This document shows, piece after piece, positions 4,935-60,596 of a stretch of 64,000 bases of DNA. The notes under the pieces were generated by a model. That model ran no database searches and had not been told where the DNA came from. It was given only the letters and a program-made list of their open reading frames with translations. Numbering within the stretch: the first letter of the stretch is position 1; each line of letters starts with the position of its first letter. The stretch is taken from contig DF236986.1 of NCBI GenBank assembly GCA_000708835.1, positions 1 through 64,000 of the forward strand. Direction: 5' to 3'. The translations under genes were made by a program, and so were the position numbers. This stretch comes from Klebsormidium nitens (Eukaryota > Plantae > Klebsormidiophyceae).

Positions 4935-7900
4935 ATGGCGGATCCGGAGCCAGCGAAAGGTCTCCTCCCCTATCTTCAACGAGCCGACGAGCTGCAAAAG
5001 CATGATCCTCTCATATCTTACTACTGTGAGCCATCTATATTGATTTATCTAGCTGGAGTTTATGCTTTTGCACTTTCATGAGCCAATCTTTGGGGCACTG
5101 CCTTGAGTTCTGATATTCTTCTTGGCTGAACAGGTGGGATCAAAACAATGCATTGCTGCAGCAGTGCATAGCAGACGGCCGTTTATTTACGGAGGTTGAT
5201 TGCGCAGATCCTTCGGTGCTCAATTGCGATGAGATCTTCCGTACTTACCTCATCTCCGATTTGATATGGTTGGGGAGCGAATTGGTTATCCATTTAGACA
5301 GCCTTAATATTTCGTCAGAACAGGTTGGTGCATAGACCATGCCTTACACCGGGGTTTTCTCTTCGTATGCAGGTCGCATGTATGCAGTGGACAAGGGCAT
5401 CAAGATCCCAAAGGCACAGCGGACACAGACCACCAATGACCTGCTCAAGTCGATTCTAATCCAGCTAGAAAAGGTGCGAGACAAAAAAGATAGGAAGCAC
5501 TGGCGGCATTGCATTCATTGCTGCAGATCACCCCAGGCTACAATGGTTGAGGGGCGTAGCGTTGCTTGAAACGTCTCCTGAAACGTTGCCTGAATGTCCT
5601 GCCTGAAGATGCCAAGGAGTGGAGCAATTGCAGATGAGACCGCCTCAAGCACCACTTCACTATCAAGCCATTTGTTTCAAACTGACGGGATTCCACCCAT
5701 CGCAGTCTTCAAACTTCAAGCATTCGCTGGTCAAAGTTGCATAGACAAGGTCGATACTGAAGCCGAGGTTAAAGATGGCTGTCACTCCAAACCCAATTCT
5801 GTCATGCCATTAGGACGGCACTATCTTTGCAGCCAGCATTGACAGCTGTCAAATAGATGCAACTCAAGAGGAAAGTCTTATAAAGCCGTATTTTGCATCG
5901 CTGCCCGTTCTGCAGGACAAGAAGGCGGTCAAGTTGAACGAGCAGGACGACCCCATGTATGTCGAGGGCTTTGCGCTTAACGTGTTTGCCAAGGCAGACA
6001 AGCAGGACCGGGCGGGGAAAGCTGACTTGTGAGTTGTGGTTGCCATCTCATGTCTTGTTTTGTCTACTTAAGTGGATTAGCTTTTCTTAACACGGGTCCT
6101 TTTCCATTAATGTTAGCCCTTTGGTTGATTGTGGACAACATCGCCAGGTTTCGCTCCCCTGATCAAACCAAGAAATCCTGTAAAAGCAGAGTCGAAGCTA
6201 GGCTAGAAAGTTTGTAATCTTGTACGATGAGTTTTTGGGATGTCTCGGGCACTTGTGAGAAGGCCGTTGGTTCAAGAAAGTTGTGCCCCTTTTCGATGAT
6301 CAGCCCGTTTGAGGAATCAATGGCCAAGTGCCCTTCTTTGTTCAATTTTAAAATGCACTCAGATGGGTCAACTTAAGTCTCTGGGGTTGAGATTCCCTTT
6401 GTCAGATGAAACCCGGCAAGTCGGACGGACTCTAAGAAGGCGCGCACTCTGCAGCATTCCGGCATCAGCTGCTCTTACTAGTTATTTATGCTGTATAAGG
6501 TCCTGAGGTTGACAAGAGAGCGTTTTGCAGGAACACGGCCAAGACCTTCTATGCTGCCAGCATCTTCTTTGACATGCTGCGGCAGTTTGGGGAGCTGCAC
6601 CCCGACGTAAGGCCTTCAGCCGACAAACATTGAACTTTACGCCTGTCGAACTTCACCAGCTTTTTGAATCCGCTATTGGCTATCTGAGGTCTCTTTGACA
6701 CGTCAGATGGCCCCAGGGCGTGTCTTGGCAGAGCCCCTCGGAAATCGTTTTCGTCCATTCAAACGCATACTTTTCGCATTGCTCATCGCCCATGAATGAT
6801 GGGAATTCAAGCCAACAGGATCCAAGCCAACGGAACTCAACCTAACGGAATCCAAGCCAGTGGAATGCAACGCCTTTTCTATACCTGCCTCTGCTCCAAG
6901 GCGCTTTCAGAATCTTGGCTGCGGCATAAAATCGACGCCTGCCAGCTCGCTTCGATTATCCAATACCGAGGATGCTCTTCTGAACTATCCTGCTTCGATT
7001 GCCCATACAGCTTTAGAGTCAGATTTGTACAATTGACTCTCGCTGGCGGTGTTCAAATCTCAACACCCGTGAATGCCTCTTCTCACAAGTCTCAAGCTCC
7101 TCGCTTCCAGATCGCTGAGAAGCAGAAGTACGCCGTATGGAAAGCGGCAGACATCCGCGCAGCGTTGAGAGACGGGCGCAAACCGATGGCCGGCCCTCCG
7201 GGGGGTGATGCGACCATGGACCAAGATGATTCGTTGGTAAGCTTATCTACCTGGGGTCTTGCTTTGGAACATTGATTCGGTGCTTGTGTTTTGGGGTCCT
7301 TCTATTCTGGCCCTTGCTTCTGGGACGTTGCTTCTGGGGTGTTGAATTGGTCTCCTGTGGTTTAAAGTGGGGCCTTGTTTTGGGGTTGTCTGGTATGTTG
7401 AATTGCTTTCCTGTGGTATAAATTGGGGCCTTGTCTTGGGGTTGTCTGGTATAGAGTGGGGCTGTGTCGGGGATCTTGCTTCGGGGGGCCTTGTTGCATG
7501 GACCTTGTGTCTGAGCCTCGTTTTGGAAGCCTTTTCGTATGCGGGTCTTCATTCTCGAGTCCTTGAGTCTGAGCCTTCTTCTGCCTTTGGCTTTGTTTCT
7601 CTTGACGCGCTGTTCTGGGGGAGTGGTTATCAAGAACCGTGACCACTTCTTCGCGCACTCTTCTGCGCAGTCTCAATAAACTCGGACCTTAATGTCACCC
7701 TACAGAGGGGCATTGTGTCCAGTCTTCTTCTCGGCAGCGACCAAGGGGAGAAAAGCCGAAAACGATTATGCCTGATACATGCTGATTGCGTATCATTTGG
7801 ATCTTAGCCTGATTGTTGTGGAACGACCCAGGCTTAGCCTCAAAGCTGGTTTTGCGACGCGGCTCAAATACCAATCTCGAACCTGATTCTTCCACAGGCC

Positions 7901-9470
7901 TCCAGCCAGGCCCCCTCTTTGGACCGCCCCGTCTCCTTCAGCGACAACCTCCCGTCCATCCCCCCTCCGCAACCCCCCTCCGAGGCCTTCAACGGCTTCA
8001 GCTTATCGCACCCCCCCCCGGAGCAAAGCGGGGGGCCCCACGACCAGCCTCCCTTCCCTGGAATGCGCACCGGAGGACCCCCCCCTCAGGGTCCCCCCCC
8101 CGGGGGCCTTTCCTACCCCTCCTTTGACTCGTTCAAGCACTCGTCCGCGCCATCAATGCCTCCACCCCCACCGGCCGTCTCTCAGCCACACGACCCCCCC
8201 TCAGCGCCAGACATGGGACCGGCCCCCCCCCCGAGGGTCTACCCAGGAGGGGATCNNNNNNNNNNNNNNNNNNNNNNNNNNNNNNNNNNNNNNNNNNNNN
8301 NNNNNNNNNNNNNNNNNNNNNNNNNNNNNNNNNNNNNNNNNNNNNNNNNNNNNNNNNNNNNNNNNNNNNNNNNNNNNNNNNNNNNNNNNNNNNNNNNNNN
8401 NNNNNNNNNNNNNNNNNNNNNNNNNNNNNNNNNNNNNNNNNNNNNNNNNNNNNNNNNNNNNNNNNNNNNNNNNNNNNNNNNNNNNNNNNNNNNNNNNNNN
8501 NNNNNNNNNNNNNNNNNNNNNNNNNNNNNNNNNNNNNNNNNNNNNNNNNNNNNNNNNNNNNNNNNNNNNNNNNNNNNNNNNNNNNNNNNNNNNNNNNNNN
8601 NNNNNNNNNNNNNNNNNNNNNNNNNNNNNNNNNNNNNNNNNNNNNNNNNNNNNNNNNNNNNNNNNNNNNNNNNNNNNNNNNNNNNNNNNNNNNNNNNNNN
8701 NNNNNNNNNNNNNNNNNNNNNNNNNNNNNNNNNNNNNNNNNNNNNNNNNNNNNNNNNNNNNNNNNNNNNNNNNNNNNNNNNNNNNNNNNNNNNNNNNNNN
8801 NNNNNNNNNNNNNNNNNNNNNNNNNNNNNNNNNNNNNNNNNNNNNNNNNNNNNNNNNNNNNNNNNNNNNNNNNNNNNNNNNNNNCCGGCCCCCCCCCCCG
8901 AGGGTCTACCCAGGAGGGGATCCCTCTGCCCCCAGCTTCCACAACCCCCTGGGGGGCAACTTCGGGCAGAGACCGCAGCCTCACGAACCCCCCTCAGCGC
9001 CGGACATGGGACCGCGCCCCCCCCCGAGGGTCTTCCCAGGAGGGGATCCCTCCGCACCCAGCTTTCACAACCCCTTGGGGGGCAACTTCGCACAGAAACC
9101 GCAGCACGGGTATGGTGGCCCGCCGCCACCGGGGGGGGCTGGATACCAGGTGCCACCGCCCCCTGCTAGCAGCTCTGGCTATCCGAGCATCCCCCCACGA
9201 AACTCGACCCCTCCTCCGGTTTTGCCGTCGGTTCCGTCAAGAGCTCCGCAGCCTGTGGGAGGGGGGCAGAGTTACTTCAGTGGGGTGCAGATGCCGAACC
9301 CCGTCCCGGGGTACACCCCGACGCCCGACAGAGTGTTGGAAGCCCAAAAGCTCGGAAGGTTTGCGGTCAGCGCGCTAGGATTCGATGATGTGCAGCCAGC
9401 GATTAAGTACCTGACGCAAGCGCTGACGCTCTTGATGGTGCCCAATGCGGACATAGGAGAGATAAAGTAG
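4935..9470 (+). CDS. VTA1: VTA1/LIP5, ESCRT VPS4 cofactor (MIT domains, Pro-rich linker, C-terminal VSL domain)
   Basis: Spliced exons: MADPEPAKGLLPYLQRADELQKHDPLISYYC / RMYAVDKGIKIPKAQRTQTTNDLLKSILIQLEK / DKKAVKL...VEGFALNVFAKADKQDRAGKADL / NTAKTFYAASIFFDMLRQFGELHPD / IAEKQKYAVWKAADIRAALRDGRKPMAGPPGG. The last exon ends EAQKLGRFAVSALGFDDVQPAIKYLTQALTLL. These match the plant LIP5 family. Confidence 0.92.
6802..6874. repeat. Intronic 15-bp minisatellite, about 5 units
   Basis: ggaattcaagccaac / aggatccaagccaac / ggaactcaacctaac / ggaatccaagccagt / ggaatgcaacgcc inside a VTA1 intron. Confidence 0.8.
7341..7452. repeat. Intronic 56-bp tandem duplication within a G/T-rich degenerate repeat tract (~7250-7520)
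   Basis: gttgaattggtctcctgtggtttaaagtggggccttgtttttggggttgtctggtat is followed by gttgaattgctttcctgtggtataaattggggccttgtcttggggttgtctggtat. Confidence 0.8.
8186..9095 (+). repeat. Coding 126-bp (42-aa) tandem repeat in the VTA1 last exon, interrupted by an assembly gap
   Basis: gagggtct(a/t)cccagg recurs at 8233, 8900 and 9026, giving a 126-nt period between the last two. Unit: RVYPGGDPSAPSFHNPLGGNFGQRPQPHEPPSAPDMGPRPPP. Confidence 0.9.
8256..8884. other. Assembly gap (629 N)
   Basis: Run of N flanked on both sides by the same repeat unit. The reading frame differs across the gap, so the gap length is an estimate. Confidence 0.99.
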
Positions 9471-10966: not shown

Positions 10967-13900
10967 CTATGCGTCGTCCCTATGTTCACTTGGTCCGATC
11001 CAATCCGGCGGTCCTGGAGGCTCGTCAACCATGACGCCTTCTACGAATGTATATGTACCCTCCGAAGTCTCCCCTTCCCCCTCGTCTTCTTCAGGCCAGC
11101 CCGCCAAATGGTGGTCTCCTGCATCGGCTCCGTCGATGTGTTGGTGGAACCCCAGCCCACCTACGGCTGAGTGATTTGACACGGCGGGGCCTTCCGTTCC
11201 GTGCGGCAGCGACGGCGGTTGCCCGGTCTGCTGGGACCCCGAGGCGCCCGTGTGGTCTCCGTTGAGGAGACGCGAGAGAAGAGACTCGACTTGGATGGCG
11301 GTGGCGTCGCGGTTGTTCTTGTTCAATGTTAGGACAGCTGCAGGGATAGATACACAAAAGGTTTTAATCTTCTCAACACCCAACCCAGCACGTGACTGTG
11401 TTCATGTAAAGAACAAGAAAGTCAGGACTTCCCGGCCGTCTGTCCACGTACTAGCTCCAGCCGCAGAGAGTCGACGGCAAAATGCAAGCAATCTGCTTTC
11501 GTGGCAGCCTGATCACGCGAACTGATCAAAGGAGCGAGCAGCCGAGCAATCAATCATAAAGCCAATCTTCTTCTCGTGCTGTATCACGCCTACGCTGCTC
11601 TTCCGTTGGAGCCGACTCCAACCACGAACTTGCTGATCAAGCAATAACACGCAGGATCAGACAGACAGGCAGCGATAGACAAACTTTGTAACCATACCTG
11701 TGTCGGGCCGCTGCTTGATGTCCTCGACGAAGTCGATCGTATGCCGGTACCGAGGGGCAGGGAGGGAGCCGAACACCTGAGCGCGAAATGGGGAAAACGA
11801 ATCACTTATAGCGGCCAGCCGCTGTAGCAACAAGCGCATCAAATCTTTCATCCCTGTGCATTGTGTGGCAGAAGCCCAGGCGAATGAGAAGCTGGGGCTA
11901 CTTATGCCCAAACGGACGTTCTCAGTGAGTCACGCTTCCGGGAACGTAAAGCTGCGAATCTGATTATATTGAAAAGAAGAGAATTCCAAGCACCACAGCC
12001 TCGCCTTACTGTGTATGACACTTGCTCGGGCACCAGGATTTGGAAGCGCTCTGGCTGCATAATCAGAATTGTGTCTTCAATCTCTTTCCTATGCGGAAAG
12101 AGGTCAGACGAAACGAACAACTATGGGGCAGATTCAAAATTGAGCACTTACCACTGTGTCCGGGGAAGCAAGGAGAGCTGTGACGGCGTCCTGGAATGGT
12201 CGGCTGCACAGCTCCAACCGGCCGACCTGTGCAGACAGAAAAAGAAAAGCTCGAAAAGAGTAAAGAGCACAACTAGATGTGGATCACAAGCAGCGGTGGA
12301 TAAAACTTTGTAACGGCTGAATCGTGTGCCGCAACAGGAGTGGGTTCGGTGGGCACCGAAATTTCCATCGTCAAAAATCTAGATGACTGGTGCAGCTACG
12401 ACGGTGACTACTTTCGAATCGGACGAAATACGCGACAGTGAATCGCGTAAAGCTAGCTCTAACCCGAGCACGCTGAGTTTCAAACGCAACAATCTGTCTC
12501 CTACCAGTCCAAGGGGCAACAAGCCAGGTGAAATTGACGGGTCAACGCCCGCAAATACAATAGAAGGTAACACTGACACGTAAGGTTAAGTTGCAAAGTA
12601 GGAAGGAGAGCAATGCCTTGAAATGGAAGTCTCGTTGACCAGACCAAGCAGGACGTCCGATGACTTTTCTATCTACCATTGGAGACCGCTCAGAACACTC
12701 CCTCTGTTGACCACCCGGTGAGGCGCTCGTAACAAATGACATTGATTACATTCTTAAAACTAGACGTTACTCACCTCGTCGATGACGTGGAGTTTGATGT
12801 TCGGGCTGGGCGTGAGGGTTGGCATCACGACCTTCTCAAATTCGTCGAGCGCAACGTAAAACTTCCCGACCTGCGCGAGTAGCACGGCCCAAACGGACGA
12901 GCGTCTGGTAAGATGAGGTGTTTGGAAGAACGAGTAGGATTATTCGAAGGCCCAGGACGAATTGCCACACAAGCACGCAGTTTCCCCTCCGTCTGCATTT
13001 CACGTGTCTTTCCGGAAGCCGCCTTGCGAAGTGCATGGCAGAGAGTGACTGCCTGGACGCTAAAATTCCATTGAGCATGAAAGAGTGCGTAGAATTCGAT
13101 GTTGTCACGAGGAAGGCAACCTTTCGTTTCCGTACACAGATGCATCTGAAGCGACATCAAAACGCGACTGGTGACTGGTGACAGGCAAGGTCTTGCTTTG
13201 CGGTTCTTACGAATCTGGTGACGCTTCAGCCAGGTAGCCTGTCATACAGTCGTCGCATGCTGGCCCAGACAACATGCCTTCGTCCAAAGTCGTCATGACT
13301 TTGTTTCACAGAATATGTGAGGATATCTGATCGGAAAACGACTGTCTCTTACCTTCTCTACACGATTCCCCTGCCACTTCTTCACTCGGCATAGTGGGGC
13401 CGTTTCTCCGGTCAATGTGACTGCCACACAATTAGGGCACGCTCAGTACATCGAAAGCATAACTCTCGTCGAACCGAATGGAAGGCAGCTGCTACATACA
13501 AAGTCCAGCGGAAGTGCCAACTCGGGTCGAGCAGAGAACATATAAGGATTGCCAACCAACAGACCACTTGCAAGCATTCTGCCGATCTGCGAGTGGAGCA
13601 CGTGCAAGCTGAGAAATGATTGACGAAAAAGCGCAAGGAACTCTCTGGGAGCTGTAGCGACACACACCGACGTCATACCCAATCTTCTCATTGGTTTCGG
13701 GGGACCGCGCCTCTACGGTGTAGAATCCAGCAATGAGGTGCTGGGGCAACTTCCCAGCAACGTTCAGCACCAGCCTGCAAATGAAGGCATGAGCTGCCGT
13801 TTGTGTTGTTGACAGCGACAATTCTGGCGCATGTTCCATCGAAGATAAGGATTGCCTTTATGTTGTGAAACTCCTGCAGAATGAATGTGTCTATCTGCTG

Positions 13901-14319
13901 CCTATATAGTTGGTGCAAGGAAGCTGCCAATGTTTGCCACTCAGTGATGCTATTCCGGATTTCTAAGTCCTTCTTGTCAACTGTTGATAATTCCACTACA
14001 ATCAAGCTATGTGGCCTGCTGGATCCGGTTGTGAATTGTTCCACCAGCAAATCCATAGATGACCAGACTATTCATCTACAGAGCCGTCAAAGAAGAAGGT
14101 GCTACCCTTCCCTTGAAATTCTCGTATCTTCCAACCAGACAACCATGTACAATTTTAGATTATGACAATCGCAGTCAATAGAGGACAATTGCTTGACAGC
14201 AGAAGCAAGTCTTACACTTGGAACGAGCACACTTACGAGGTCTTTCCAACCCCAGGCTGTCCTGTGACAAAGACATTCACGTTCGTTGAGCCAGCGGGCG
14301 GCAGCACCACTTCGCTCAT
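10967..14319 (-). CDS. NTPCR: NTPCR/THEP1-family nucleoside triphosphatase with an acidic C-terminal extension
   Basis: Spliced: MSEVVLPPAGSTNVNVFVTGQPGVGKTS (Walker A) / LVLNVAGKLPQHLIAGFYTVEARSPETNEKIGYDV / ... / VGKFYVALDEFEKVVMPTLTPSPNIKLHVIDE (Walker B) / VGRLELCSRPFQDAVTALLASPDTV / VFGSLPAPRYRHTIDFVEDIKQRPDT / AVLTLNKNNRD. One middle exon near 13100-13300 is uncertain. Confidence 0.87.
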
Positions 14320-16062
14320 CAGGCTCCAGTAGCAGCAGCTGGAGGCTGCCTCTCCAGCTTGGTGGATGAGCCCTCCAACGCTGGCTCAACTTCTTCCCTC
14401 TCTAGTTCACAGCTCCAGCTTGAAGCAGAACGCTCGTTTGCTACGGACAATTAGAGCCGTAGCCGACTGTGCTCAACCATTGAGGGGGTTTGGGAGGCGA
14501 GGTTCTGCTGCGGCAGCTACAAAGAAGGATGGAGCTTTACCTGTATGCAACGAGAATGGAATGAGGCTTCTAACAGTTGCAAGAGATACTCAAAAAGCCA
14601 GAATCGCTCTCCGCTTTCTTGCAGGAGACTCCATGTGGATACTGTTGGTATTCAGAGAAAAGTAAGGTCAAGGATTTCAATCGCCAGCCTCGCCTAAAGT
14701 TGTGTTCTCAGCAGCACAAGCAAAGGTTGTGCTGGGGACAGTAGCTACCGGATCGCTTGTGCTTGCCAATTCTGCATATGAAATGCTTGGACTGTCAGGA
14801 GCTTTCTGTTGAGGGAGGGCTGGATCTCCATATCAATACATCAATAAGAACGAGCCTTACAGCCGTACAGCCTCTTCCCCCAAGTTGCTACCTTCAAGCC
14901 ATGTTTCCCTTCATCACTCCACTTGACAGAGTTACAGCGTTTTATTCAAATTGAGAGTGAGTGTTCATCGCTTCTGGTTCTCAACACTTGTCTACTACCA
15001 TGGAGTCGATTCCATTGGTGGTGTTTGTTCAGATATGCAGAAGATTGATTAGTTCCAAGCGACTTTCGCGCTGAATACCTCCTCGATGCTCCATCAGATG
15101 GTGCATCGAGCCCAAGCTAATCAAGAATGATGATGCAGGTCTATAAATGACGAACTCACACATGGTTCTCCCATCGTGAACTTTGATAAAGTAGAATGGT
15201 ATCATTTTGGTTCAAAAACTTTGAATGGATTGCACCACTTTCTTAGCGGCTTAAGAGAAACCCTTGACAACATCTTCTAGGAAATTGTCGACATTTCAAA
15301 GCTTCAACAAGCAAGCTTCATTGTGAAAGTGCCAGCTTTCAAGATCTCTCAGGTGATTGTAATGCTGATCAGGTTTTTCAACCATTCAGAACTTGGAAGC
15401 AAACGGCACTCACCAGTATTTTGGTTGCAGAATATATGTGCCACAACCACGAACGCTGTAGAGAAGTTGCTTTGACAGCCTTTGATAGTTGCAACAGAGC
15501 ATTGATTCCAATGGATCTCTAGAACATTCCGCGACCCCCCCGGCTCAGCAAATTGCTCCTTGCTCAGGAACGAATAAAGAGCTATGTCCTTACTTCCCAA
15601 AGATGAGTCTTATCTAACATCAGCAACATTGTGCAGCCGCCTCTGATCTCAATCTGCAATTGCTTGCGCTCACAAAAGCCTGGAAAGACGAGAGAAAGCT
15701 GGCCCCCAAACAAAACTTCTAAGTTTCAGAACTTTTCACGACATTTTGTCCAGTCATGCTATGCAGTGCATGTGCGGAGCGCGCGCGCCGTCAGAACATT
15801 GCGGTATGGGGGGTTCGCTTCTGAGTCGGCTCTCGGGAAAACTTTGCACCCCCCCGGGAAGCGATTCCGTTGAATGCAAAATGTGCAATGATATGGTGAG
15901 CCTTGCATCATGCACTCCCTCATCATTGCTAGGCATCAAAGGAAGGGAGCAGCCGGCCCGCATTGCATTGGAAGTTGAACGGCATTGCTCTTTTGAGCTC
16001 ACTCGGTTGGGACAAGTTACTAATAGTTTTACAGGAAGCCGCTCCCATCTTCTGCTCTGGCA

Positions 16063-19000
16063 TTGAAGGAGGGCTTGCCAAGTTGGAAACAAGCGGTCTT
16101 CGGACAGATGCCAAGTGGTACGTGTCTGAGGGGACTGACAGGAAATGCACCACCCCTTCATCGCGCACCGAGCGGCGCACACCGCTCAAATTACCACATT
16201 GCAGGAGCCAATGCATCAGAAGGCGGTCTGCTAAGAGCCGCCACTCATTCTGCAGGAATCAGATCCAGCATTGCGTCTAAAAGCACAATTGTCAGGTCAC
16301 GGCGGTCGTTCTTTGTCTCACAACCGCAGAGCACAAGTAGTGCACATTTATTGAATTTTAAGCAATATTCAGGTTTTTGTCCTCCTCATCCATCCAGTGC
16401 CCCCTTACGCATAACCACTAGTGCCATAGATCTTTCCACCGGCGTTGCTCAGTCCATAGAGCAGCGAAGCTTAGAATCAGAGCAATCAAATCGCTCGATG
16501 GCAGAAGTAGATACAGATGAGGCCGAAAGCAGCCCCCATAACGAGCCCTTTGCAGATTACATATCAGATGCTGTGGACAAGTTGAGGCCGCAGTTCGAGC
16601 AGGTAGACCGGACGGTGGCTGTAAATCTGCGGAGAGTCCTAGACGCATACCGAGAGGCGCGAGTGGGGTCGCACCATCTGACTGGCGCAACGGGCTACGG
16701 GCACAATGACGCTGGGGGAAGAGAGGCGTTAGACACGTGAGCTTGGTTTGTGTATAAGATGACCCGCACAAACACTGAGCAAGCTTGATTCTCTGAATCC
16801 GTCCGGGGGCTAACGTTGGCTTTTGTGGTAGTCAAAACGGGCTTAGACTACACCTCAATGAGCTGGAAGAGTGGTGCACTGTCAAACTGGACAAATGGCC
16901 AAGCTTTCTTTTCTACCCACTTGTTACATCATGTTGCGTACGAAGCGTCCTGGTTCTAGTAGCTGTCGCGCGCGCAGGGATTGGTGCTGGTCTCGGTGTG
17001 GCAACTTCTTCCTTCCACTGCCACTGATGTGAGAGAACCTTCCCGCATGACTCTAGTACAGTACTCTCGGGCAAGGTCTCCTTTCGTCGTAAAGGGCCTC
17101 ATCTGGGGCTGGTTAGCAGGTGATTGAGAAGTGTGGGAACGTGGTTAAAAAGTGACGCGGCTTTGCTTGCAGGGCCTTTGCACGAATTGTGGGGGCGGAG
17201 GCTGCCATCGTGCGGTCACAATTCTTCTCTGGGACTCATGCAATTGCTGCGGCGCTGTTTGCGGTCCTGAGGCCTGGGGATGAGCTCCTAGCCGTGGCAG
17301 GTCAGTGAATGCTTTCGCGCATTGTGCGCCTTTTTCGTTTGTTTGGCAGGACTGTACTGCTGTTTGTCTCGAGGTTTTCGATGGCAATATTTGCGCACTT
17401 GAAGAAGAAGCAGATGTCTTCCTCCTCCTTGTTCTGGTCATGACGCATGCGGAAGTTTGAGACCACTGTTCGTCCTACGTCGCTGGCGAAGATAATCTGG
17501 TCAGGATGTTTGCAACGAAAGAAAGTCTGCTCATAGCGGTGACACGCCCCCTGTTACTAACCGAACTTTCCAATGTAGCTCTTATCTTTCTCCCCGCTAG
17601 TTCCCAGGTGGCCCTTAAGACAGCCTCGAGGAAGTGGTCGACCTGCCGGCACACGGCCACACAGCTCACGTCCACAATATGTAGCGGCCAAACGCCCCTT
17701 CCACGAAGATTAGCTCCCGAATTGTGCCCCGCTCTACTTCGCAGGTGCCCTTACGACAAATTTGAAGATGTGATCGGCCTGCGCGGCCCGCCCGCTCATG
17801 GGCCCTCGCCGAGTTCGGCGTTTCGTACGGAGTGCTTCCACTTAGTCCCTGAGGGAGAGCTCAATCTTGCCCGCTCGTTTCATTCACGAGCTGCCAATCA
17901 GCTCCCAAGTTTCGCCCCATCCTAGTTTCCAGGTGCCTTACGACACCCTCAAAGAAGTGATGTACCTCCCCAGCACACTTCGCTATCATCTCAACCGCCT
18001 CCTCCTTTCTCGCATTGAACAGATGCCCCCCTCGCCACTAACTTACAGAATCCATCCCTGATTCTCGCCCCACTCTGCTTTCCAGGTGCCCCTTACGACA
18101 CCCTCGAAGAAGTGATCGGGCTGCGCGGCACGCCCGGCCACGGATCCCTGGCAGAGTTCGGCGTCTCGTACCGGGTGCTTCCGCTTACCCCCGGGGAAAA
18201 GCTGGATTTCGCCGCCCTCGAAACGGCGGTCGGAAGCGGGACGAAGTGCGCGCTGATCCAGCGGTCGTGCGGGTATTCATGGCGGGAAACGTTGACAATG
18301 GAGGAGATCGAACGGGCGGTGAACATTATCAAGCGGCAGAATCCGAAGTGTGCGGTGGTCGTGGATAATTGCTATGGGGAGTTTGTGGATATAAAGGAAC
18401 CGACGGCGGGTGAGTCGGCTCTTTACATGCGTGCGACTCTGAAACGAAGAACGTTTAGGGCGGGCCGGACTCCAGCATTGAATCTGTGTAGCCTTCAGAG
18501 CTTCGAGACCTGGGCCAAGGGGCTGACCTACCGGGGGGGATCCCAGTACGACACTGACGCGAGATAAGCAGAGACTTTCGTCTTTCTGGCGACTAATTTG
18601 ACCGCTCCAATATTGGACCTGAGCACGAACTCAACTTGCGATCCCTTGCCCTTCCAACCCAAACCAAACGGGTTCATGTATCTGTTTCCAGCGAACGGTC
18701 TTCGTCTGCTCTGCAGTTGGCGCCGACTTGATTGCCGGAAGCTTGATCAAGAACCCCGGGGGTTCGATCGCGCCGGGAGGGGGCTACGTGGCAGGGCGAG
18801 AGGACCTTGTCGACGCGGCCGCTGCCCGGTTGAGTGCCCCGGGCATCGGTCGGGACGCCGGAGCGACGCCCTCGTCCGTGCAGAGGCTCATGCTACAGGT
18901 GGGACGGCAAAGTTCCGCAAAGCGGGCACAAGATTCTGTAACGACAGTCGGCATTGTTGAGCAGACTCCCCAACGCTTGCGACTGGTCAGAAAGCCTTTT

Positions 19001-49825: not shown

Positions 49826-52800
49826 ATGGCCCCCACAAAGGATCTACTCAAGGCGGCATACCGGATTGGGGAGAGAGCGAGCAAGCAGGGTTCGAGGCAC
49901 GTGTTGAAGGGTGGTCGGGATGGATCTACATGCACTACAGCCCAATCGGCACGCAGGCCTAGCAGCAGGCAAGTGCTTCTTGTTGGATCAATGCATTCCA
50001 CTGATGAGTTGAACCCACTTTGTCGCAGATCCCAGAGATATCGGGGCCTCAATTCTGTTCAATCAATTCGTACATGCCGGTGACGCCCAGAGACGCAGAA
50101 TGTGTTGCCTGAGCATTGCAAAAAATTGTGACTTTACAGTTGAGCAGGCCCGGCACATTTCATGTTTCCTTACGTCAAAATAAAGTGCTGTAACATGTTC
50201 CAGAGAGTTGCGTTGCCAAAACCTGAAAAGTGTTTCAGGCAGGTGGTGTGATCCAATTTTACAGGGTTTCCTCGAGAATTGCTGGAGATGCACTTCGAGC
50301 AGGCTCCTCAAATCTGTGCGGCCGTGCAAGCTCGACGAGTTTGACCAGGTAAGAAATTTACCGTGTAGATCCGACACCGAAACAACGTGACAGATCTTTT
50401 TGGTTGAGTTTGACTTTGCATAAAGAGGTTGTGGTCGTTAAAGAGCTTCATTGCAAGCTGGTGCGCAAATACTATTTCTTAAATCATTGCACCCTGCATT
50501 GTGCGCTCGGCGGAAGTATCAGGCCATTTTGTTTTAGCTTGAGGTATGCACAAATTGCACCTACGAATTACATAGTTTCTCCTTCGTAATATCAGCATTG
50601 TGCTAGAGGATGCAGTGTGGAAGGCTCAAATAATGAAATTAGGAGTCTTGTTTCTTGCAGGATGTTAGAGCTGATAGAGGGGCACGGGGTGACCCGTTCT
50701 CTGGCTGGGGCACTGGGGGCCACTAGAGGGTTTGCCTCAGAGGGTAAGCTTACCACTCATAATCTAACCCCCAAAGTAGAGCGTTTTTGAAGGTTTGAAC
50801 TGGCTTTTGCAATGTGTGCTCTTGGCTTCATGCTGCCTCATGGTTTCAAAAGGGCGCACATGTGTTGGCAGAAAAAGGCAGGGTCTGGCGCCTTCCATTT
50901 GCTTACGCATTTCAGTCCTACGTGTCAGCTGTGCCTTGACATTCTGAGGCAATGGGACTGTTTCAGAATGATCCCAACAAATCAGAGAGTTTTCATTGCT
51001 GAGGACAGGGACGAAAGGAATGTTTAGCTCCTGCAATCTATTTAATTCGTGCGCCAATTCATTACAGCTTGTATCCTCTTGTTGTTACAGGGCTGCCAGT
51101 GCACACCGTCCTTTCCATGCCGGCCCTGTCACCAACAATGGTAAGCCCCTCGAGCTTTGCCACCTTCTTCCACCATTCCACTTTTCTCTGTCAAACCAGG
51201 CGTCACAGTGTGGACTTCAAAATGGTCACGATCATTATCAGACTCGTTCTTGACAGAATAGGACACGGGATACATTTAAGGGAGTGTCAGAATGAGCCAT
51301 GAAATTTCATTTCTCTTAGTTGAAATGATTTGTTCAACCTTCAACTTGCGTTGCTGCTTTCTTGAGAGCCTGAATTTCTGGGCTTACGGCCCTTGTGAGG
51401 GCTTGCAAGTATCCCAGTACGGCTTTTCAAAGGTACGCTTTTTAAACGGTCGTTTGCCACGATTGATCAACATGCCAGCAACCCCACTACTGCTTTTGAC
51501 TGCATTTTTCTTTGTTCGTTGGCTCTCTCCAATTGTCCATGTTTTCTCTGTCGCAACCGAACCTTGAGCGAATCTGAATGGTAACAAAGCAAGGAAGATG
51601 ACAGAGTAGCACTTTCTCAGTCTCCACCCTTCCAAAAACCGAGAGAACGGAAGAAAGGAACAGGATAATACGAAAGAGAAGCGGCTCATCTCTCTGTCTG
51701 CAAGAACAAAACAGAGAAAAGACGAGAAAAAGCAGAAAAAGGCTGGGATTGCGATCATGACCAGACTTCGAACCCACCCCCTTTTGCAGGAACAAGGCAA
51801 CGTGGCTAACTGGCAAAAGAAAGAGGGGGAGTCCATAAGCGCGGGGGACGTCCTCGCAGACATCGAGACTGACAAGGCCACGCTGGCATTCGAGTCCATG
51901 GAAGACGGTTTCCTCGCCAAGATTCTCGTTCCATCTGGGGAGAAGAACGTACCGGTAGGGAAGCCGTTGGCAATTGTGGTGGAAGAAGAGGGAGACGTTG
52001 CTGCGTTTAAGGATTACCAACCGGACGGAGGAGCCGCGCCGAAGCCAGAGACGAGCGTGCCGGCAAAGGAGGCTCCCAAGGAAGCCCCGAAGAAGAAGCG
52101 GAAGAAGAAGGCGGCACCAAAAGCGGCGGCGAAAGGTGCGGGTTTGCGGGTGTTGTTGGACGACTCGGGATGTATTGGGGCTGAGTGTAGCAAGAGTCGC
52201 TTTTGATGTATCTCTATGTTGATCTTCTACTCGAGCCGCAGTCGACATCTTGAGGAGGGCGATCGTCTGAGCTTGATTGAGAAAGATACAATGCCTGTGG
52301 TCCTCGATTGGCCTTCTCCTTTGGGAAACCGACTACAAGCTTGCCTTCTTTAGCTTTCTAACAGAGAAGGGAAGCTGAAGGCAGCGGTGTCATTGCAGTC
52401 CGATGTTTCAACGGCTTGGAGTCAGATTTGCAGTGGGTCAAGGTTTGTACTCAGAACATACCCCTTTCTGCGCTGCAGAGTATCCCCCGCACATCAAGAT
52501 CGACATGCCAGCTCTCTCTCCAACGATGGTGAGTCAGAGCCTGCCTTGGAGCCTGCTTGTGGGAATTACCTGCGGCGATTTGAAGGATTTTTGACCCCCT
52601 TCCGTTCCATCGTCCCTCAGGCTTGAACCAGATTATAGACTAACGAAAACAAAGTCTTTGACCACCCTCACAGGCCCTATATGAGCTCTTTTCGCAAAGG
52701 CATCTTATAACTCATTTCTGTATGCTCTCTTGTCTGATCGCTCGGTCAACAACTGCAAGCGTTGGACGGCTTGATATTAGGCATTGGACGGCTTAGAATC

Positions 52801-55800
52801 GATCGTCGTTGTTGCTAAGGAGCGGAGTGCTGAAGTTCGCAAACAATGACTCCCAGGCAACCGTTGAGTTCTGTCAGCTTAAGCCATACCATGGCTCAAA
52901 GTGCTCTATTATGCTCGCTTGTAGACGCAAGGCAACGTTGCATCGTGGTCCAAGAAGGAAGGCGATGAGATCGCAGCAGGCGACGTCATTGCTGAAATCG
53001 AGACGGACAAGGCGACAGTCTCGCTGGACTCCCAGGAAGACGGGTGAGCGGGAGATTGTCGGGAGTGCTCAAATCTTTGTGTGCCGGCTTGGCTTGTTGA
53101 GGATTCGCGTAAGCGACTTGATGGTAGTTACTTTGTCGAGTCGGAGTGCAAGCTCGTGGCTCGTTCTCATCTAGCGTTTGCATCTTGTCGCCCGTGCTTT
53201 GCCAGAGTTTGTAACAACGTTGTCCCTCACTTCGTACGATGAACTCCTTCCCTACATTTGGATATTGCATCATTCTCGGAATGAGGTTGCTGGATATCAT
53301 TTGCCGCCTTCTGCACCAGACGCATACCTAACTCCCTAGATTGGCTGCATGGAATGAAGTATATGAGCCCAGATTCTTTTCACTCAAAGCTTAGACACGA
53401 TTTGCGGGTGCAGGTTCCTTGCGAAAATTCTTGTCAAGGACGGCGCAAAGGATGTCCCGGTGGGCACTCTTCTAGCCATTGTGGTAAGTGCGCTCTATTT
53501 CCATCCTTGGGTCTTTGCCCTGGCCAGTAGTGCAACGGGGAAAGAGTCACGTTGATTGATGGGCAGACACAGGATAATTTCGGTTGTCAAAATGCTGATG
53601 GAACCAATTCAAAAGCAGAAATGGCCGGGATTTGCTGATTGATCGGGCGGTCCTGGTTGGGAAGGGACAGACACTTCCTTGTTGCGAAACTCACGGAGCC
53701 TTTTTGATATTGGACCGAGCAGAAGGTCGATTTTGTGCAAGTATCGCCTCGTCTTTGTTCCGGATCTAGTTTCTTCTCTGGTTGTTTGATGCTCAGTAGC
53801 AGGGTTTTTCCTCAACGTGCAAACGTTTGAACGGATGGCTTGCTAGACCGTTCGATGCGCCTCCCAAGCACATCTCCTATTAGTGCGCCTCTAACACTGA
53901 ACCCTGGTCCTATTCTATCTGCAGGTCGAGGACAAAGACACGGTGTCAAAGTTCGCCGACTTTTCCCCCGAAGCTTCCGCCGCCGACGAACCCTCCACCT
54001 CCGACGCAGAGGAAGAGGAGTCTCCCGAGCCCTCCGCCAGCCAAGACAAGCCCAAGCCGCCCCCGAAAACCTTCAAACCCTTCACCGGGCGCATCTGGCC
54101 GACCGCCCGCAAAATCCTGATTGAGTACGGCGTAGACCCGTGGGAGGTGAAGGGGTCCGGTTTGAACGGGATAATTACGAAGGACGACGCTGTGGCGACC
54201 ACCAAGGGCATGTCCAAGCCCGAGGAGTCGCCCGAAACGAGCGCTGCGGATGAGGAAGAAGGGGAGGAAGAGCAGGTGAAGGAGACACCAAAGAAGGTGG
54301 AAGGGAAGAAGGAAACGGGGAAGAAAGAGGTTGGAGGTGCGAAGCCGGCGGCGGCGGGGGGGCCGCCGAAGAAGAGCGCGGAGCCGATGGCGGGCGGGGA
54401 GTTCGAGGACGTGCCCAATTCGCAGATCAGAAAAGTAAGTGGCTGATGTATTTTGGCTGGTGACGATGTTGTCCTTGTATGGAGCGGAATGCCCGCTATT
54501 TCTTTGGAGGATGACATGGAAATTTCTGCCTCACCTACAGCGACTGGTTCGTAATGAATGATGGGAAAGTCATCGAACGAAATTGAGTGCGACTGGGACA
54601 AGTGTGTCACGTCATTCGGCGCTGTAGCCAAGTTGCTTTAAATGCCGTATGGTGATACAATCCAGTGAGAATCCCGAAGGCCACTTGAGCCAATTCTGTC
54701 TGCCTCTGCACCGGTGGGACATGCACAGGCTTTGAGCCCACAGGAGCTGGTCAGCGATGCTGCTTTCCGCCCGGTTGTTTTAGAGCCTCGTAGACATGCT
54801 GTCACATGCTTGTATGAGATGGTCGTCGTCTGCCTTCACACGGCTTCTGCCATTTCCTTGCGGCCAAGGCTGTCAAGTCTTGCAGAGTATTTCCAGGTGT
54901 CCGCTTTCCATCACCAGTTTCGAAAAAACAACGAACGTCTTTGCCTCCCTGCAGATCATCGCACAGCGCCTGAAAGAGTCAAAATGGGGCACTCCGCACT
55001 TCTACCTAAGCGCAGGTGCGTGAGGTTTTTATCTCGTTCTCACCTTGTACCAATTGAAGCTTCACATTTAAACGCAAAAAATCTCGCGTCGAATCCACTT
55101 TTGAACGCTGCCTGCTTCCTCTGCTGCTTCCTCTGGGGTGTGCTGCATCCACTCGGGGGGGCTTACAGTCTCTTAGGTTTCAAAGTCAGCTGGCAAAAAA
55201 TCCAATGATTCGTTGAGACTTCTGAGTACACGCATGTGCAGAGTTGCCAACTTTGACAGACTTTCTTTCCCTTTCTTTGCGCAGATGCCAATCTCGACGC
55301 GGTGTTGTCCTTGCGAAAGGAATTGAAAGGTAAGCGGCTTTCACCTCCGTCCCCCACTTCTCCAAGCAACTCGGGGGTGCACCACTATTGGACTCTTCCA
55401 GTGTAGTCGACACAACCCTTCATACAACGTCATCAAAACGGAGCGGTACAATTGACTCAAGCTTCTACGATCCTGAATATTCCCACTCGATCAAAGTCTA
55501 CATGTCCTCAGCGAATTACGGTTACAAGGGGCATACTGGATCCCTCCATATGAAGTTTCTGATTTCTTTTCGGACGCTGCAGAGAAGCACAAGGTGTCTG
55601 TGTCCGTGAACGACTTCGTCGTGAGGGCTGTGGCGGTTGCCCTGCAACGAGTTCCCGAGGCGAACGGTAAGCCAGGCCGGTTTTGACTTGGCCCCTTCGA
55701 AAGCATGCGTTTTACCATTGTCATTGATTTACTCGCTCGTTGTCGGATCTTCAGTTTCCGCCAAGTCAAGCCTGACGGCTGGCCAAACGCGCGTGAGCAC

Positions 55801-58800
55801 GATTGCATTGCGCTTATACATTCATTCGCTTCCATAGCACCGACGTGCAAACCGAGCCGGCCCAGGAAGGTGGACTGACGGTCGCACGTTTCCATCCCGC
55901 ATGAAATTTTACCCGCTTATCGGGCTTTGCGAAAAGAAAGGACAGCACCCTTTTCTGCCGTCTTGATGAGCTGGCCATATCGGACCACGCGCTCACAGGT
56001 CTGCATGCGGACGTGAGAATAAAAGTTCGTCTTCTTGCAGCATTTTGGGACACGAAGAAGGAGGAGGTGACGTCGAACCCAAGTGTCGACATCTGTGTGG
56101 CAGTTGCGACCGATAAGGTGAGAAAATCTTCAGTAGTCAGGCCTTCTTTCAGTGTTGTGCTGCAGACGTGTGAAGAATCTACGACTTTGGAGGAACGAGA
56201 GGTGACCATCATCGAATGTGAAGTCGTTTTCAAAGGCCGAGAGTCTTCCAACGTTGGAGAAGCTTCGAGTGTCCTTTCAGTGCCCGGCTCCTAGTAGCCC
56301 ACTCATGAAGCATGCGGACTGTTGGAAGGGGTTATTGCAATGGTCATGCGCTTATGCGCTATTTTCCAGGTTTCGCCAAAGCCTATCGTAACCCCTCCTC
56401 CTCGTAGGGTTTGACGACGCCCAATTTCTTCTCTGTTTGACTTTTCTTTCTCTAAGCATGCAAATCAAATGCTCTGCCCATTAATCCGCAAAAGCAGGCC
56501 GTTCCCATAATTAACTTAACCGCCCGTCAAAATTCTCTCCCTATAAGCTCTGATGACGCCCACTTTGAAGCGTGCGGACCTGAAGACGCTGTCCGTCATC
56601 TCGTCCTAGATGAAGCAGAATCTGCATTTTTTGACTGGCAAATGCCTGGTTATTTCAGGGGGTGTGAAAACCCGGCCAATCTCCTCCCCTGCAGGGTCTG
56701 ATGACGCCCATTGTGAAGCATGCGGACCAGAAGACGCTGTCCGAGATCTCGTCGGAAGTGAAGGACCTGGCAGAGCGCGCCCGCTCGGGCAAGCTCAAGC
56801 CGGAGGAGTTCCAAGGGGGGTCGTTCAGGTGAGGCCGCGGCCCGATGATGAGCCCCCCAGAACGGAAGGACAGAGTGGCGCAGCATCCTGACGTGCTTCT
56901 TCCCTGTGGTAGATTATGAATCAGGGCGGGAATGTTGCAGTTGTCAGGATTGTTTCCGCAGGCCTACAGGTCCCGGCAGGATTCAAAGCTCACCTCAACT
57001 TTCAAAGTTTCGTCATTGTTCCGTTTGACTGCCTGAGCGGGTCAAGGAGAATCCGTAACTTTGATAACCGGGGTCGGAATTGCTGCAAGTTTTGATGACG
57101 TGGCGGGTTTATGGGCGAAACCCTGGACTAGGCTTCTTTCGACCCATCATGCATCAAGGAGCCCCGGGTCAAAAACTCTAAACCTCGCCACGTCATCCCT
57201 CCCAACAGCATCCCCGGCCGGGGGTTCCAAAATGACTCTTCTTGTCCCCACTCTACCTGCAATTGGAAACTGTTCTCCGATCACATATCCTTCGACCAAC
57301 CATGCTATCAGGAATGACGAATGCACTGCACGTAGGACTGTTAAGGCGTGATCTTGTTCTACCTGTCGGCTCAGTGAAGCAGATCCGCCCTGTGCCTGCG
57401 ATCATATCATGGACATTAATCAACCGTAGCAGAAAGGCTGCAATAAACGACCGTCTAAACAGACTCGTTCTTTGCAGTATATCCAACTTGGGCATGTATC
57501 CCATCGACTACTTCAGCGCCATCATCAACCCGCCGCAGGTGAGCGCTTCTCTCTCTTGACTCTCTTTTCCAGGCCGCCCTGTACAGCTCGCTAGGTTTGC
57601 CAGCGATTCGAGAAGGTTTACACTCGGTTGGGCGATCTTAGTTGCTGCAGCATAGGGTTTCTGTAGTTCAACTTAGAATTTCCAGTTTAGTTGCTGAGGA
57701 TTTGTGTCAAGGCAAAGTGTGTCAGGGCGAAGTGTAGCAGTCGTGAAGTGGTTGGCCCCTGTTCAACCCCGGCTGATCTGGATTACAGACTGTTGGGCAG
57801 CTTATTCTTGCTTGCGAGGTCTTTCTTGAAGTCGGAGGTAAGTTCAGTCCCTCCCCTTCGGGTCGACAATGGGGTCACAGAAAAACCTTGGCTTGACGCG
57901 ACCTTGCTTCCCACATACGTCCAGGCGTGTATCATGGCGGTTGGGAAAGGCAACAAGAAGGTCGTATGGGAGACCAAGGAAGATGGTGAGTGTGTCTCGA
58001 CGTACATTTGCAAACGTGCTCTCACTTTTGGTGGTCTTTACCAAAGACGACTTTTCGCTACTCTTGCGTCGAGATGGTCAATTGGAAAAGAAAACGGCTG
58101 TCTGGTTGGCAATGGCTCAGCCACATGAAGACAGCTCAGAGCCCACTTCGGTTTCTTTTTGGACAGATTTTTCTGTGCAAGCTTTGATATGTCACGCTAT
58201 CCTTCTAAGGGTCTACTCAACGGCTTCTTTAGTTGAACTTTCGTTTCGCTGGACAGCCTTTGCTTCCGTCTGCGCTTCTGAAGTCCTCACTTCGAGGGTC
58301 TGGTTCAGAAAGGCCTACGAACGAACGTTGTTTTTGTTTGTCCGTCCTTCGTTTTCTCCGTTGCGCCGATCCGCGGATCTGTCCTTCCAGCTCGATCGCC
58401 CACTTGGTCTCGACCCTTTCTTCTCGCCAACGTTCCCATGCAATGCCTGCAGGCACTGAAAGCCCCGCCGTTGTCACGCAAATGACGGTCACCCTTTCAG
58501 CAGACCAGCGGGTCTACGACGGCGAGATCGCGGGTGAGTGCTTCTTCAGACTCCTTGTTTTGAAAATGCACTCTGAAACAGGGAGAGAGCCGAGACGAGG
58601 TTTCCAGTCATGTACTATTTTTGTGATGGTTCCTCGGCAAAGTGTCCGTTTGGTGTTGTTTGACGACTTGAGCATCCCTGATTCATTTGCACGTATCAAG
58701 GAAAAGCCATGTTGAGCTGCTTGTATCGTCCGACTTGGGACTTGCATGCGTATGTTTGACAATCCTGATCTGCCCCGTGCTAGAAGCACTGATTCCGTCG

Positions 58801-58948
58801 GCCAGCATGCGTGCGTTAAGGTCTAGTAAGAGCGAAACACCGCTGCACTTGATGTGAGTACTGACATTGTCAATCTTGTTCGTCAACAGGCCGCTTTCTT
58901 GCCGAGTTTACGTCTGCCATGAAGGACCCAGCGCAACTATTGCTTTGA
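49826..58948 (+). CDS. LTA3: Mitochondrial pyruvate dehydrogenase E2 (dihydrolipoamide acetyltransferase) with two lipoyl domains, LTA3 type
   Basis: Presequence ending RGFASEG. Lipoyl 1: MPALSPTM...DIETDKAT. Lipoyl 2: MPALSPTM...EIETDKAT. Peripheral-subunit-binding domain: [33 protein letters not shown]. Core: [79 protein letters not shown]...LLL*. Confidence 0.95.
56297..56614 (+). repeat. Three decayed copies of the acceptor plus start of the E2 exon at 56695
   Basis: ctctgatgacgcccactttgaagcgtgcggacctgaagacgctgtccgtcatctcgtc (~56548) vs real gtctgatgacgcccattgtgaagcatgcggaccagaagacgctgtccgagatctcgtc. Shorter copies at ~56404 and ~56297. Confidence 0.9.
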
Positions 58949-60596
58949 AAGTAGAAAGACAACATTCCCTTATCAGCGGCTAGCTTTTGAGCTGCGTATC
59001 TGCGCTAAAAGAAGGTGCTCCTATTTGCGACACGCTTCTGCCCCTTATTCGAGTAACGCAGTGGCGGCTGCTTTTCGAGTTTTGCTGCTGCTCTGCTCAA
59101 ATTGGGCCGGACTTGTTCCGCTCACCATATTTGGACCTGAGAAAGCGTCGTTTGTGACCATTAATTGTCTAAGGAAGCGATCTCCACGGACAGAAGTGTT
59201 CAGGAAGCTTTGAGGCGTCCAGACACCTGAATCATGAAGTAAGTCGGGTCTGGCGTACGACCAGCAAATAAACATGAAGTGAGTCTGACATATTGGCAAG
59301 CCACGCCTCAAATTTTATTGTGTTTATATTGCATATGCAATATGTTGCATGCACCATGGACTTCCATGGGATCCTCCGGATCAAAATGCAGATCTCTAGT
59401 TGGCATGTACAGTGATTGACCTGCATGATTGCTTGAATTATGATATTGTCCGAGCCTGAGGGCCGAGCCCGAGCGGGCTGGGGGGCCTCGTTCATTACCG
59501 TGCCTAATCATTGTATAAACTATAATGACCGCGTCCGAGTCGGCTGCTCAGCATGCATGCCAGCATGTCGATCATGCCCCTCCCGGCGCCTAATGGAAAG
59601 CTCTAGGTCAGGCGGCGCGGCGGCCCCCATGCAGCCAATTCGCGACTCTATATGATCACCTATCAGGGCGGCCGCTGGCAAGGAGCTAGCCCCCTGGCAA
59701 TGTTCCGATTGCGGCAAGCCTATTGCCTTCATGCGCGGCGGGCCCGTTCCGGCGGCTACTGTTTTGCATAAAAACAAGAAGCAGCTGAGTCAGAACCCGG
59801 GCCACCGTATTGAGCGAAGTCTGTTCACCATCTGCAATCGCTTTGCATATAGGGATAAGACGGGCCGCCAAGCCGCGGGCGGGCCCCTGCAGCCGCCTAG
59901 CTGTGTGCGAATTGCATGCATTGATGGAGAGCACAAAAAGCAATCTGCCACGTACCGCGAGAAGATCATATTGACCATGTATTACTCACTGGGCTAATAA
60001 TATGGCAGACATGAAAAAGCGCTGTTTAGTAGCGATATGAGCCGGCGCTCGAGTCTCCCAATGAAGCAACAGTACATCACCGGCAACGGATACGGAGAGG
60101 TGCCAAATGATCACCTTTCAAGAGCAAAAAGTTCAGCGCGAAGTCCCGTGTCGATTTGGGATGGCCGCCTGATACGTTGCAGGGAACGATCGGCGATGTA
60201 GTTTTTTCGTTGATCAAACCGGATCACAACAAATGAAATGAATCACAAAGTAAGATTGATAGTGGTTCTCGTTTCCATCATCAGAAGACTTTTGCAAGGC
60301 TGATGGCTTATCATTCGAATACAAATGATTAGTAGCCTCATCGCAAGTGGTTATTTGTCCGGTATGAAAAGCAACTCGCACGACCTCACTGGTGCAGCAT
60401 CTCGATATCTGCGAAAGGAAAGTCCGAAAGATCCCACTGCATTCAACGGTAAAGCAACTGTCGAACAGCGATCGACATCGACTCGACTACAATCGTTTTA
60501 GCATGGGCCGAGCTCCTCATTACCGCCGTCAATGGTCTAACTACCGCCACGCTAATCTAGTCCACAGGGGAGATTTCAAGTTTTCCGGTTCCTGGT

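Follow-up and report, generated by a model that had tools for sequence, protein, structure and literature searches.

The question raised by this locus is whether an E2 (dihydrolipoamide acetyltransferase) paralogue that has lost the histidine of its acyltransferase motif is still a working enzyme, or has become a structural subunit in the pyruvate dehydrogenase complex (PDC) of mitochondria. The gene lies on the forward strand of a 64,000-nucleotide stretch of contig DF236986.1 of the alga Klebsormidium nitens, the whole of which is referred to here as the window. In the E2 of the PDC (E2p) the histidine deprotonates the thiol of coenzyme A (CoA), an aspartate orients the histidine and a serine stabilises the tetrahedral intermediate (PMC8421416). 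The mammalian E3-binding protein (E3BP) is an E2 paralogue described as made inactive by active-site substitution; it forms part of the core, at 48:12 or 40:20, and serves as the tether of E3 (PMC8626477; PMC4059968). Fungal protein X (Neurospora, Chaetomium and yeast PX) is a non-catalytic protein by which E3 is recruited (PMC7494870; PMC8626477). As judged from the comparisons given below, the His-less K. nitens E2 is probably a core subunit of the E3BP kind with little or no catalytic activity, which stands alongside a standard E2 encoded by KFL_004810130.

Positions 58503-58523 of the + strand read GAC CAG CGG GTC TAC GAC GGC. An earlier note on this DNA had singled out this stretch as part of an otherwise intact gene with both lipoyl lysines, a subunit-binding domain and the SISNLG motif, and all of these elements were found. 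The gene, built from open frames and splice sites, consists of 16 exons with every intron of the GT..AG type (Table 1), and its coding sequence of 1890 nt has no internal stops, ends with TGA at 58946-58948 and is translated into 629 amino acids. A short presequence is followed in the protein by a pair of lipoyl domains, the subunit-binding domain and the E2 inner domain, with linkers rich in Ala, Pro, Lys and Glu. Pfam searches with the exon translations returned Biotin_lipoyl (PF00364) twice, E3_binding once and 2-oxoacid_dh (PF00198) on four exons, the PF00198 matches by exon spanning profile positions 57-212 of the inner domain. The lipoyl-lysines K73 (51874-51876) and K205 (53009-53011) each lie within ETDKAT, the peripheral subunit-binding domain (PF02817, E 1.1e-08) is located at about 54090-54194, and the serine of SISNLG is S545 (57482-57484), equivalent to S551 of the Escherichia coli enzyme. 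The active-site strand SADQRVYDG has Gln602 where the catalytic histidine of DHRxxDG is expected, and retains D601, R603 and D606. Of the residues that make an E2 acyltransferase, the catalytic serine and the aspartate of the DG are hence present and the general-base histidine is absent, and the protein combines, as PDHX (E3BP) does, an E2-like order of domains with a replaced catalytic histidine. The parts predicted to serve folding, trimer formation and docking are kept, namely the conserved inner domain (70% identical to that of the Chlorokybus homologue over 233 columns), the C-terminal ...LLL, both lipoyl arms and the one binding domain.

The glutamine codon is genuine. Twenty public sequencing runs, from seven studies, contain all or part of the stretch, and 16 of them carry 21-38% of the sampled words, as expected of spliced RNA. 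RNA-like contigs of four runs, each from a different study and together bearing two organism labels, were placed on 53300-59200. There the introns from exon 6 to exon 16, ten in number, all appeared as GT..AG joints where the model has them, and neither a differing letter nor an indel was met, with the caveat that rare variants may be masked in contigs. A search with exon 12 against 1.84 billion cluster representatives gave 2563 matches, of which two open reading frame (ORF) fragments of 116 and 43 amino acids led to three related, Klebsormidium-like genomic contigs, one of them (L001) in a Logan assembly and the other two (L002, L003) in a single metagenome of the Joint Genome Institute (JGI). 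All three hold the orthologous gene, with exons 8-16 of equal lengths and with the same splice sites, and in all three the protein sequence around the glutamine is identical to that of the window and the glutamine codon is CAG. Over the 663 nt of exons 8-16, the pairwise ratio of nonsynonymous to synonymous substitution rates (dN/dS) ranged from 0.025 to 0.094 at dS 0.16-1.45, and was about 0.03 at dS up to 1.4; dS values above 1 are saturated. Because the transcripts of four studies agree on CAG at 58506-58508, with CAC or CAT in none of them, and the three relatives carry CAG as well, an assembly error is excluded, and the reservation of the earlier note that a single-base sequencing error might be involved falls away. 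The glutamine is, judging from these alignments, old and fixed in the Klebsormidium lineage, and strong purifying selection acts on the surrounding domain.

The gene in the window is not the sole E2 of mitochondrial type in K. nitens, a possibility ruled out by KFL_004810130 (P0295), which was retrieved with a DLAT-type protein as query. This protein, 551 amino acids in length, combines a long presequence with a single lipoyl domain and a binding domain; it carries SCDHRIIDGAMGAEW, and its catalytic motif, SCDHRIIDG, is intact. Its inner domain scores 272 bits to mammalian DLAT versus 191 to PDHX, its binding domain 48 versus 16 bits, and in the tree it falls in the DLAT-type clade (support 99/91). 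Both proteins come from the same genome and are made of the same domain types; the protein from the window nevertheless differs from KFL_004810130 in the number of lipoyl domains, in the catalytic motif, in lacking a DLAT-like binding domain and in the clade to which it belongs. A catalytic, DHR-bearing E2, whose presence elsewhere in the genome the earlier note had named as a point to check, thus co-exists with the His-less paralogue, as in mammals with their E3BP. The same pair of a DLAT-type E2 and a His-less paralogue is found in Sanguina and Physarum, and a His-bearing DLAT-type E2 was present in each of the His-less species checked.

Loss of the histidine is, on the evidence of the alignments, recurrent in the green-lineage LTA3/DLA3 family and no oddity of Klebsormidium. 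Several His-less sequences were already present among the best 150 of the 2563 exon 12 matches. With the Nannochloris homologue as query, 120 relatives from the green lineage were listed in a word search, many of the sequences compared here being metagenomic or transcriptomic proteins. In the 110 tallied sequences with a readable motif the position is occupied by His in 35, Asn in 35, Ser in 15, Gly in 14, Gln in 6, Ala in 3 and Glu in 2. Asn is found in Chlorella, Nannochloris and Trebouxia, Ser in Picochlorum, Gly in Chlamydomonas reinhardtii (CHLRE_06g252550) and two sister species, and Gln in Asterochloris and Sanguina. Among streptophytes, Asn occurs in Chlorokybus, in the liverworts Calypogeia and Riccia sorocarpa and in the lycophytes Selaginella and Diphasiastrum, and His is retained in Riccia fluitans, Marchantia, mosses and Spirogloea. 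The land-plant matches to the Chlorokybus protein have His in 100, Asn in 4 and Ala in 1 of 105 cases. The step from His to Gln is specific to the Klebsormidium lineage, since Chlorokybus carries Asn, at a distance of two base changes from Gln, and His is found on the branches that come next. Riccia fluitans (P0235) and R. sorocarpa (P0247) carry His and Asn, respectively, on very short branches, a pair of sequences that shows how recently the residue can flip.

The same pattern was seen in an alignment of 74 inner domains, in which the catalytic column holds His in 15 of 15 DLAT-type, 8 of 8 bacterial, 15 of 31 LTA3-like and 0 of 12 PDHX-like rows. In no group does any sequence depart from the Ser, Asn and Gly of SISNLG or from the Asp and Arg of D-x-R. 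Mapped on the tree, the histidine changed at least 15 times within the 31 LTA3-like rows versus not once in the 23 DLAT-type and bacterial rows, and these counts remained the same with the motif columns removed. Since overall column conservation is alike in both families (0.69 vs 0.72) and the neighbouring residues are invariant, the relaxation is specific to the catalytic residue.

The evolutionary relatedness of these proteins was assessed in a maximum-likelihood tree of the 74 rows and 234 columns (LG+C20+F+G4 with posterior mean site frequencies, PMSF), rooted on bacterial E2p. The eukaryotic sequences form two clades. The DLAT-type clade (99/91) unites animals, Paramecium, a cercozoan, Dictyostelium, Physarum, KFL_004810130, Chlamydomonas eustigma, Sanguina and Haematococcus. 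The second clade (100/94) consists of PDHX-like proteins together with the green LTA3/DLA3 family (99/98); its PDHX-like group comprises a tunicate protein named PDHX-like, for which human PDHX is the best solved match, the His-less paralogue of Physarum and a cluster holding a Conidiobolus protein. In this comparison of LTA3 orthologues from chlorophytes, charophytes and bryophytes, with H, N, S, G, Q, A or E at the site, the window protein is positioned inside the streptophyte LTA3 clade (100/97), between Chlorokybus and the embryophytes, a position in keeping with the assignment to K. nitens. With the DHRxxDG columns removed, the bipartition joining LTA3/DLA3 with the PDHX-like proteins stays at 100/93, so that the grouping is not a product of the motif columns; a duplication internal to the green lineage was rejected by the approximately unbiased (AU) test (p = 0.0005). 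The inner domain of the Chlorokybus protein (P0243), the closest named relative, scores 217 bits to human PDHX versus 209 to human DLAT. Taken by its place in the tree, the LTA3/DLA3 paralogue is old, and a common origin with PDHX is favoured, not secured.

The amoebozoan Physarum (P0114, P0329) and the early-diverging fungus Conidiobolus (the P0087 cluster) have full-length PDHX-like, His-less paralogues with complete inner domains of the E2 type, that of Physarum accompanying a standard DLAT-type E2. The existence of these paralogues suggests that the mammalian type of E3BP is far older than animals.

Among known systems, mammalian E3BP (PDHX, protein X; PDB 6h60) resembles the K. nitens protein in the order of lipoyl, subunit-binding and inner domains, in the replacement of the histidine and in having a catalytic DLAT-type E2 at its side. 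PDHX differs in having one lipoyl domain instead of two and Ser instead of Gln; furthermore, the DG following the motif is kept in the alga but mostly lost in PDHX-like proteins, and the algal binding domain bears no clear PDHX signature. In ascomycetes, PX contributes a small, divergent C-terminal fold inside the E2 core, whereas the algal protein has a full inner domain of the E2 type. The plant counterpart is Arabidopsis LTA3 (mtE2-1, At3g52200), whose seed-plant orthologues, annotated as component 1 of the PDC, mitochondrial, share with the K. nitens protein the streptophyte LTA3 clade, two lipoyl domains, the signature SAD-x-RV[YF]DG and the C-terminus ...LLL; the seed-plant members, however, nearly always have His where K. 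nitens has Gln. DLA3 of Chlamydomonas reinhardtii (P0238) likewise has two lipoyl domains and a replaced histidine, in SADGRVYDG, but with Gly instead of Gln and on the chlorophyte branch, and thus through a substitution event independent of that in Klebsormidium. DLA1 and DLA3 were treated as putative mitochondrial E2 subunits by Bohne et al. (PMC3570535).

In the E3BP-like role, the window protein would co-assemble with the His-bearing KFL_004810130 through its conserved inner domain, and would supply lipoyl arms that swing as well as a site at which a peripheral enzyme is tethered, with the transfer of acetyl groups to CoA carried out mainly or only by the standard E2. The suggestion in the earlier note, that the paralogue may have independently become a non-catalytic scaffold or lipoyl carrier, holds up as far as an E3BP-like subunit is the best reading; the protein is neither alone nor new in this respect, since it groups with PDHX and belongs to a family in which loss of the histidine recurs, and independence can be claimed for the particular change from His to Gln only, not for the type of subunit.

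Several observations weigh against this interpretation. Only generic matches, and no signature specific for E3BP, were found in the subunit-binding domain of the window protein. A tree in which DLAT, and not PDHX, is the partner of the LTA3-like family was not rejected (AU p = 0.093). The catalytic Ser and the Asp of the DG are conserved in the LTA3/DLA3 family, about half of which, nearly all seed plants included, keeps the histidine, and the retained histidine suggests that the site is still in use in some lineages. Mutation of the histidine in yeast E2p reportedly barely altered kcat, according to Niu et al. (1990) as cited in PMC5484351, and glutamine therefore need not abolish catalysis. 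Finally, the mitochondrial location of the window protein is presumed from its short presequence and from the proteomics of Chlamydomonas DLA3, as cited in PMC3570535.

The most serious alternative is that the window protein is a working dihydrolipoamide acetyltransferase, a second catalytic isoform with two lipoyl domains, in which the histidine would be helpful and non-essential, and in which catalysis would be sustained by the way the substrate is positioned, by the conserved Ser and Asp, or by Gln or water serving as a weak base. Besides the activity reported for the yeast mutants, this is consistent with the retention of Ser545, Asp606 and the D-x-R pair, which are invariant across the family, with the very strong purifying selection on the inner domain (dN/dS about 0.03), and with the histidine being kept in half of the family. 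On the other hand, a residue found in 23 of 23 DLAT-type and bacterial rows has undergone 15 or more changes across the 31 LTA3-like rows, its replacements being as unlike as Gly, Ala, Ser and Glu, as would be expected of a site freed from catalytic constraint; the His-less species checked all have a His-bearing DLAT-type E2 as well; and the histidine is clearly important in other E2p enzymes (PMC8421416; Hendle et al. 1995 as cited in PMC5484351). Retained activity is considered rather unlikely.

It is much less probable still that the protein has moved to another 2-oxoacid dehydrogenase complex, as lipoyl carrier or scaffold, or is moonlighting outside the mitochondrial PDC. The divergence of its subunit-binding domain, in which no match to a particular type of partner was found, and a presequence of apparently no more than about 27 residues, two of them Glu, would both fit such a different task. 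The closest solved relatives are nevertheless the inner domains of the PDC E2 and PDHX, not those of the 2-oxoglutarate or branched-chain E2, and Chlamydomonas DLA3 is described as present in the mitochondrial proteome and as an E2 of the PDC (PMC3570535). That CAG, one base away from CAY, is an artefact or belongs to an expressed pseudogene has a negligible probability, the former being ruled out by transcript contigs of four studies without a differing letter and by the identical codon in three diverged relatives, the latter by an ORF intact through 16 exons and the low dN/dS of about 0.03.

The plant mitochondrial PDC is usually described with mono- and di-lipoyl forms of E2 and without an E3-binding protein. 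Full-text searches of a literature library on E3BP in plants and algae and on the active site of LTA3 found no paper that links LTA3/DLA3 to E3BP or notes the missing histidine. His-less E2 paralogues being already known from animals, the pattern across the family is the more interesting result. As a tentative extension from the tree and the substitution pattern, the green mtE2-1/LTA3/DLA3 family might correspond, in plants and algae, to E3BP/PDHX and be derived from a duplication that preceded the split of plants, amoebozoans and opisthokonts, with an acetyltransferase site that has been dispensable since. If so, this dispensability would account for the 15 or more replacements of the histidine seen in algae, lycophytes and liverworts, with N, Q, S, G, A or E in its place; plants would have had an E3BP all along, and the Gln form of Klebsormidium would be a natural active-site knock-out. 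With a conserved and expressed His-less member beside a standard E2, K. nitens offers a testable case for the di-lipoyl "E2" of algae and plants being an E3BP-type scaffold, with a bearing on the stoichiometry of the core and the recruitment of E3 in the plant PDC and on the timing of the origin of E3BP in eukaryotes. The natural variants with H, N, Q, S, G, A and E allow one to ask how essential the "catalytic" histidine of E2p is.

Table 1. Positions, in the window, of the gene encoding the His-less E2 paralogue, its exons and associated features.
Feature	Position	Strand	Evidence
Whole coding span, His-less E2 paralogue	50662..58948	+	Model, all introns GT..AG; transcripts confirm introns from exon 6 on
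Exon 1: predicted start codon and short presequence	50662..50743	+	Model; orthologous exon in L001
Exon 2: lipoyl domain 1 begins (MPALSPTM)	51091..51140	+	Model; conserved in L001-L003
Exon 3: lipoyl domain 1 with K73, Ala/Pro/Lys linker	51790..52135	+	PF00364, E 2.2e-14
Exon 4: lipoyl domain 2 begins	52479..52528	+	Model
Exon 5: lipoyl domain 2 with K205	52925..53043	+	PF00364, E 6e-10; junction to exon 6 supported by loose transcript end at 53413 in 4/4 runs
Exon 6: lipoyl domain 2 ends	53414..53483	+	Model; transcript joint 53482/53924
Exon 7: linker, subunit-binding domain, second linker, start of inner domain	53925..54434	+	PF02817; transcripts, 0 differing letters
Exon 8: inner (catalytic-type) domain	54955..55015	+	Model and transcripts
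Exon 9: inner domain	55285..55329	+	Model and transcripts
Exon 10: inner domain	55583..55666	+	PF00198 and transcripts
Exon 11: inner domain	56041..56117	+	Model and transcripts
Decayed exon 12 duplicate, 93 nt, in intron 11	56523..56615	+	77% identity to 56671-56763
Exon 12: inner domain	56695..56828	+	PF00198, E 1.4e-14, and transcripts; served as search query
Exon 13: SISNLG motif	57478..57538	+	Ser invariant in 74/74 aligned sequences
Exon 14: inner domain	57925..57985	+	Model and transcripts
Exon 15: active-site strand SADQRVYDG	58453..58533	+	Transcripts, depth 71-242, 0 differing letters
Codon CAG, Gln602 replacing the catalytic His	58506..58508	+	Window letters, transcripts, relatives' contigs
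Exon 16: C-terminal helix ...DPAQLLL, stop	58890..58948	+	Model and transcripts; conserved in L001-L003

At the 5' end of the gene, transcript contigs reach about 490-530 nt upstream of the predicted ATG at 50662 (about 50130-50661), and the sequence in this region suggests an intron in the 5' untranslated region (GT at 50349, AG at 50660) and short upstream ORFs. A longer in-frame N-terminus upstream of 50662 was looked for and not found. When the Chlorokybus protein P0243 (the source of the inner domain with 70% identity) was used as query, with targets limited to 0.55-1.75 times its length, the 629-residue protein was not returned, and weaker land-plant matches were; the public gene model of the locus may be missing, split or fused.

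The duplicate in intron 11 covers the acceptor region and the first 69 nt of exon 12. No splicing into it was found in the transcript contigs, in which only the joint 56115/56693 was seen, and it could be a dead twin exon. In L001 the same intron holds related remnants at 6659-6715 and 6881-7027, one of them with an in-frame stop.

A run of 629 N at 8256-8884 of the window represents an assembly gap. In L003, a TIR / NB-ARC / LRR gene pair (13758-16150, minus strand) adjoins the orthologous E2 gene.

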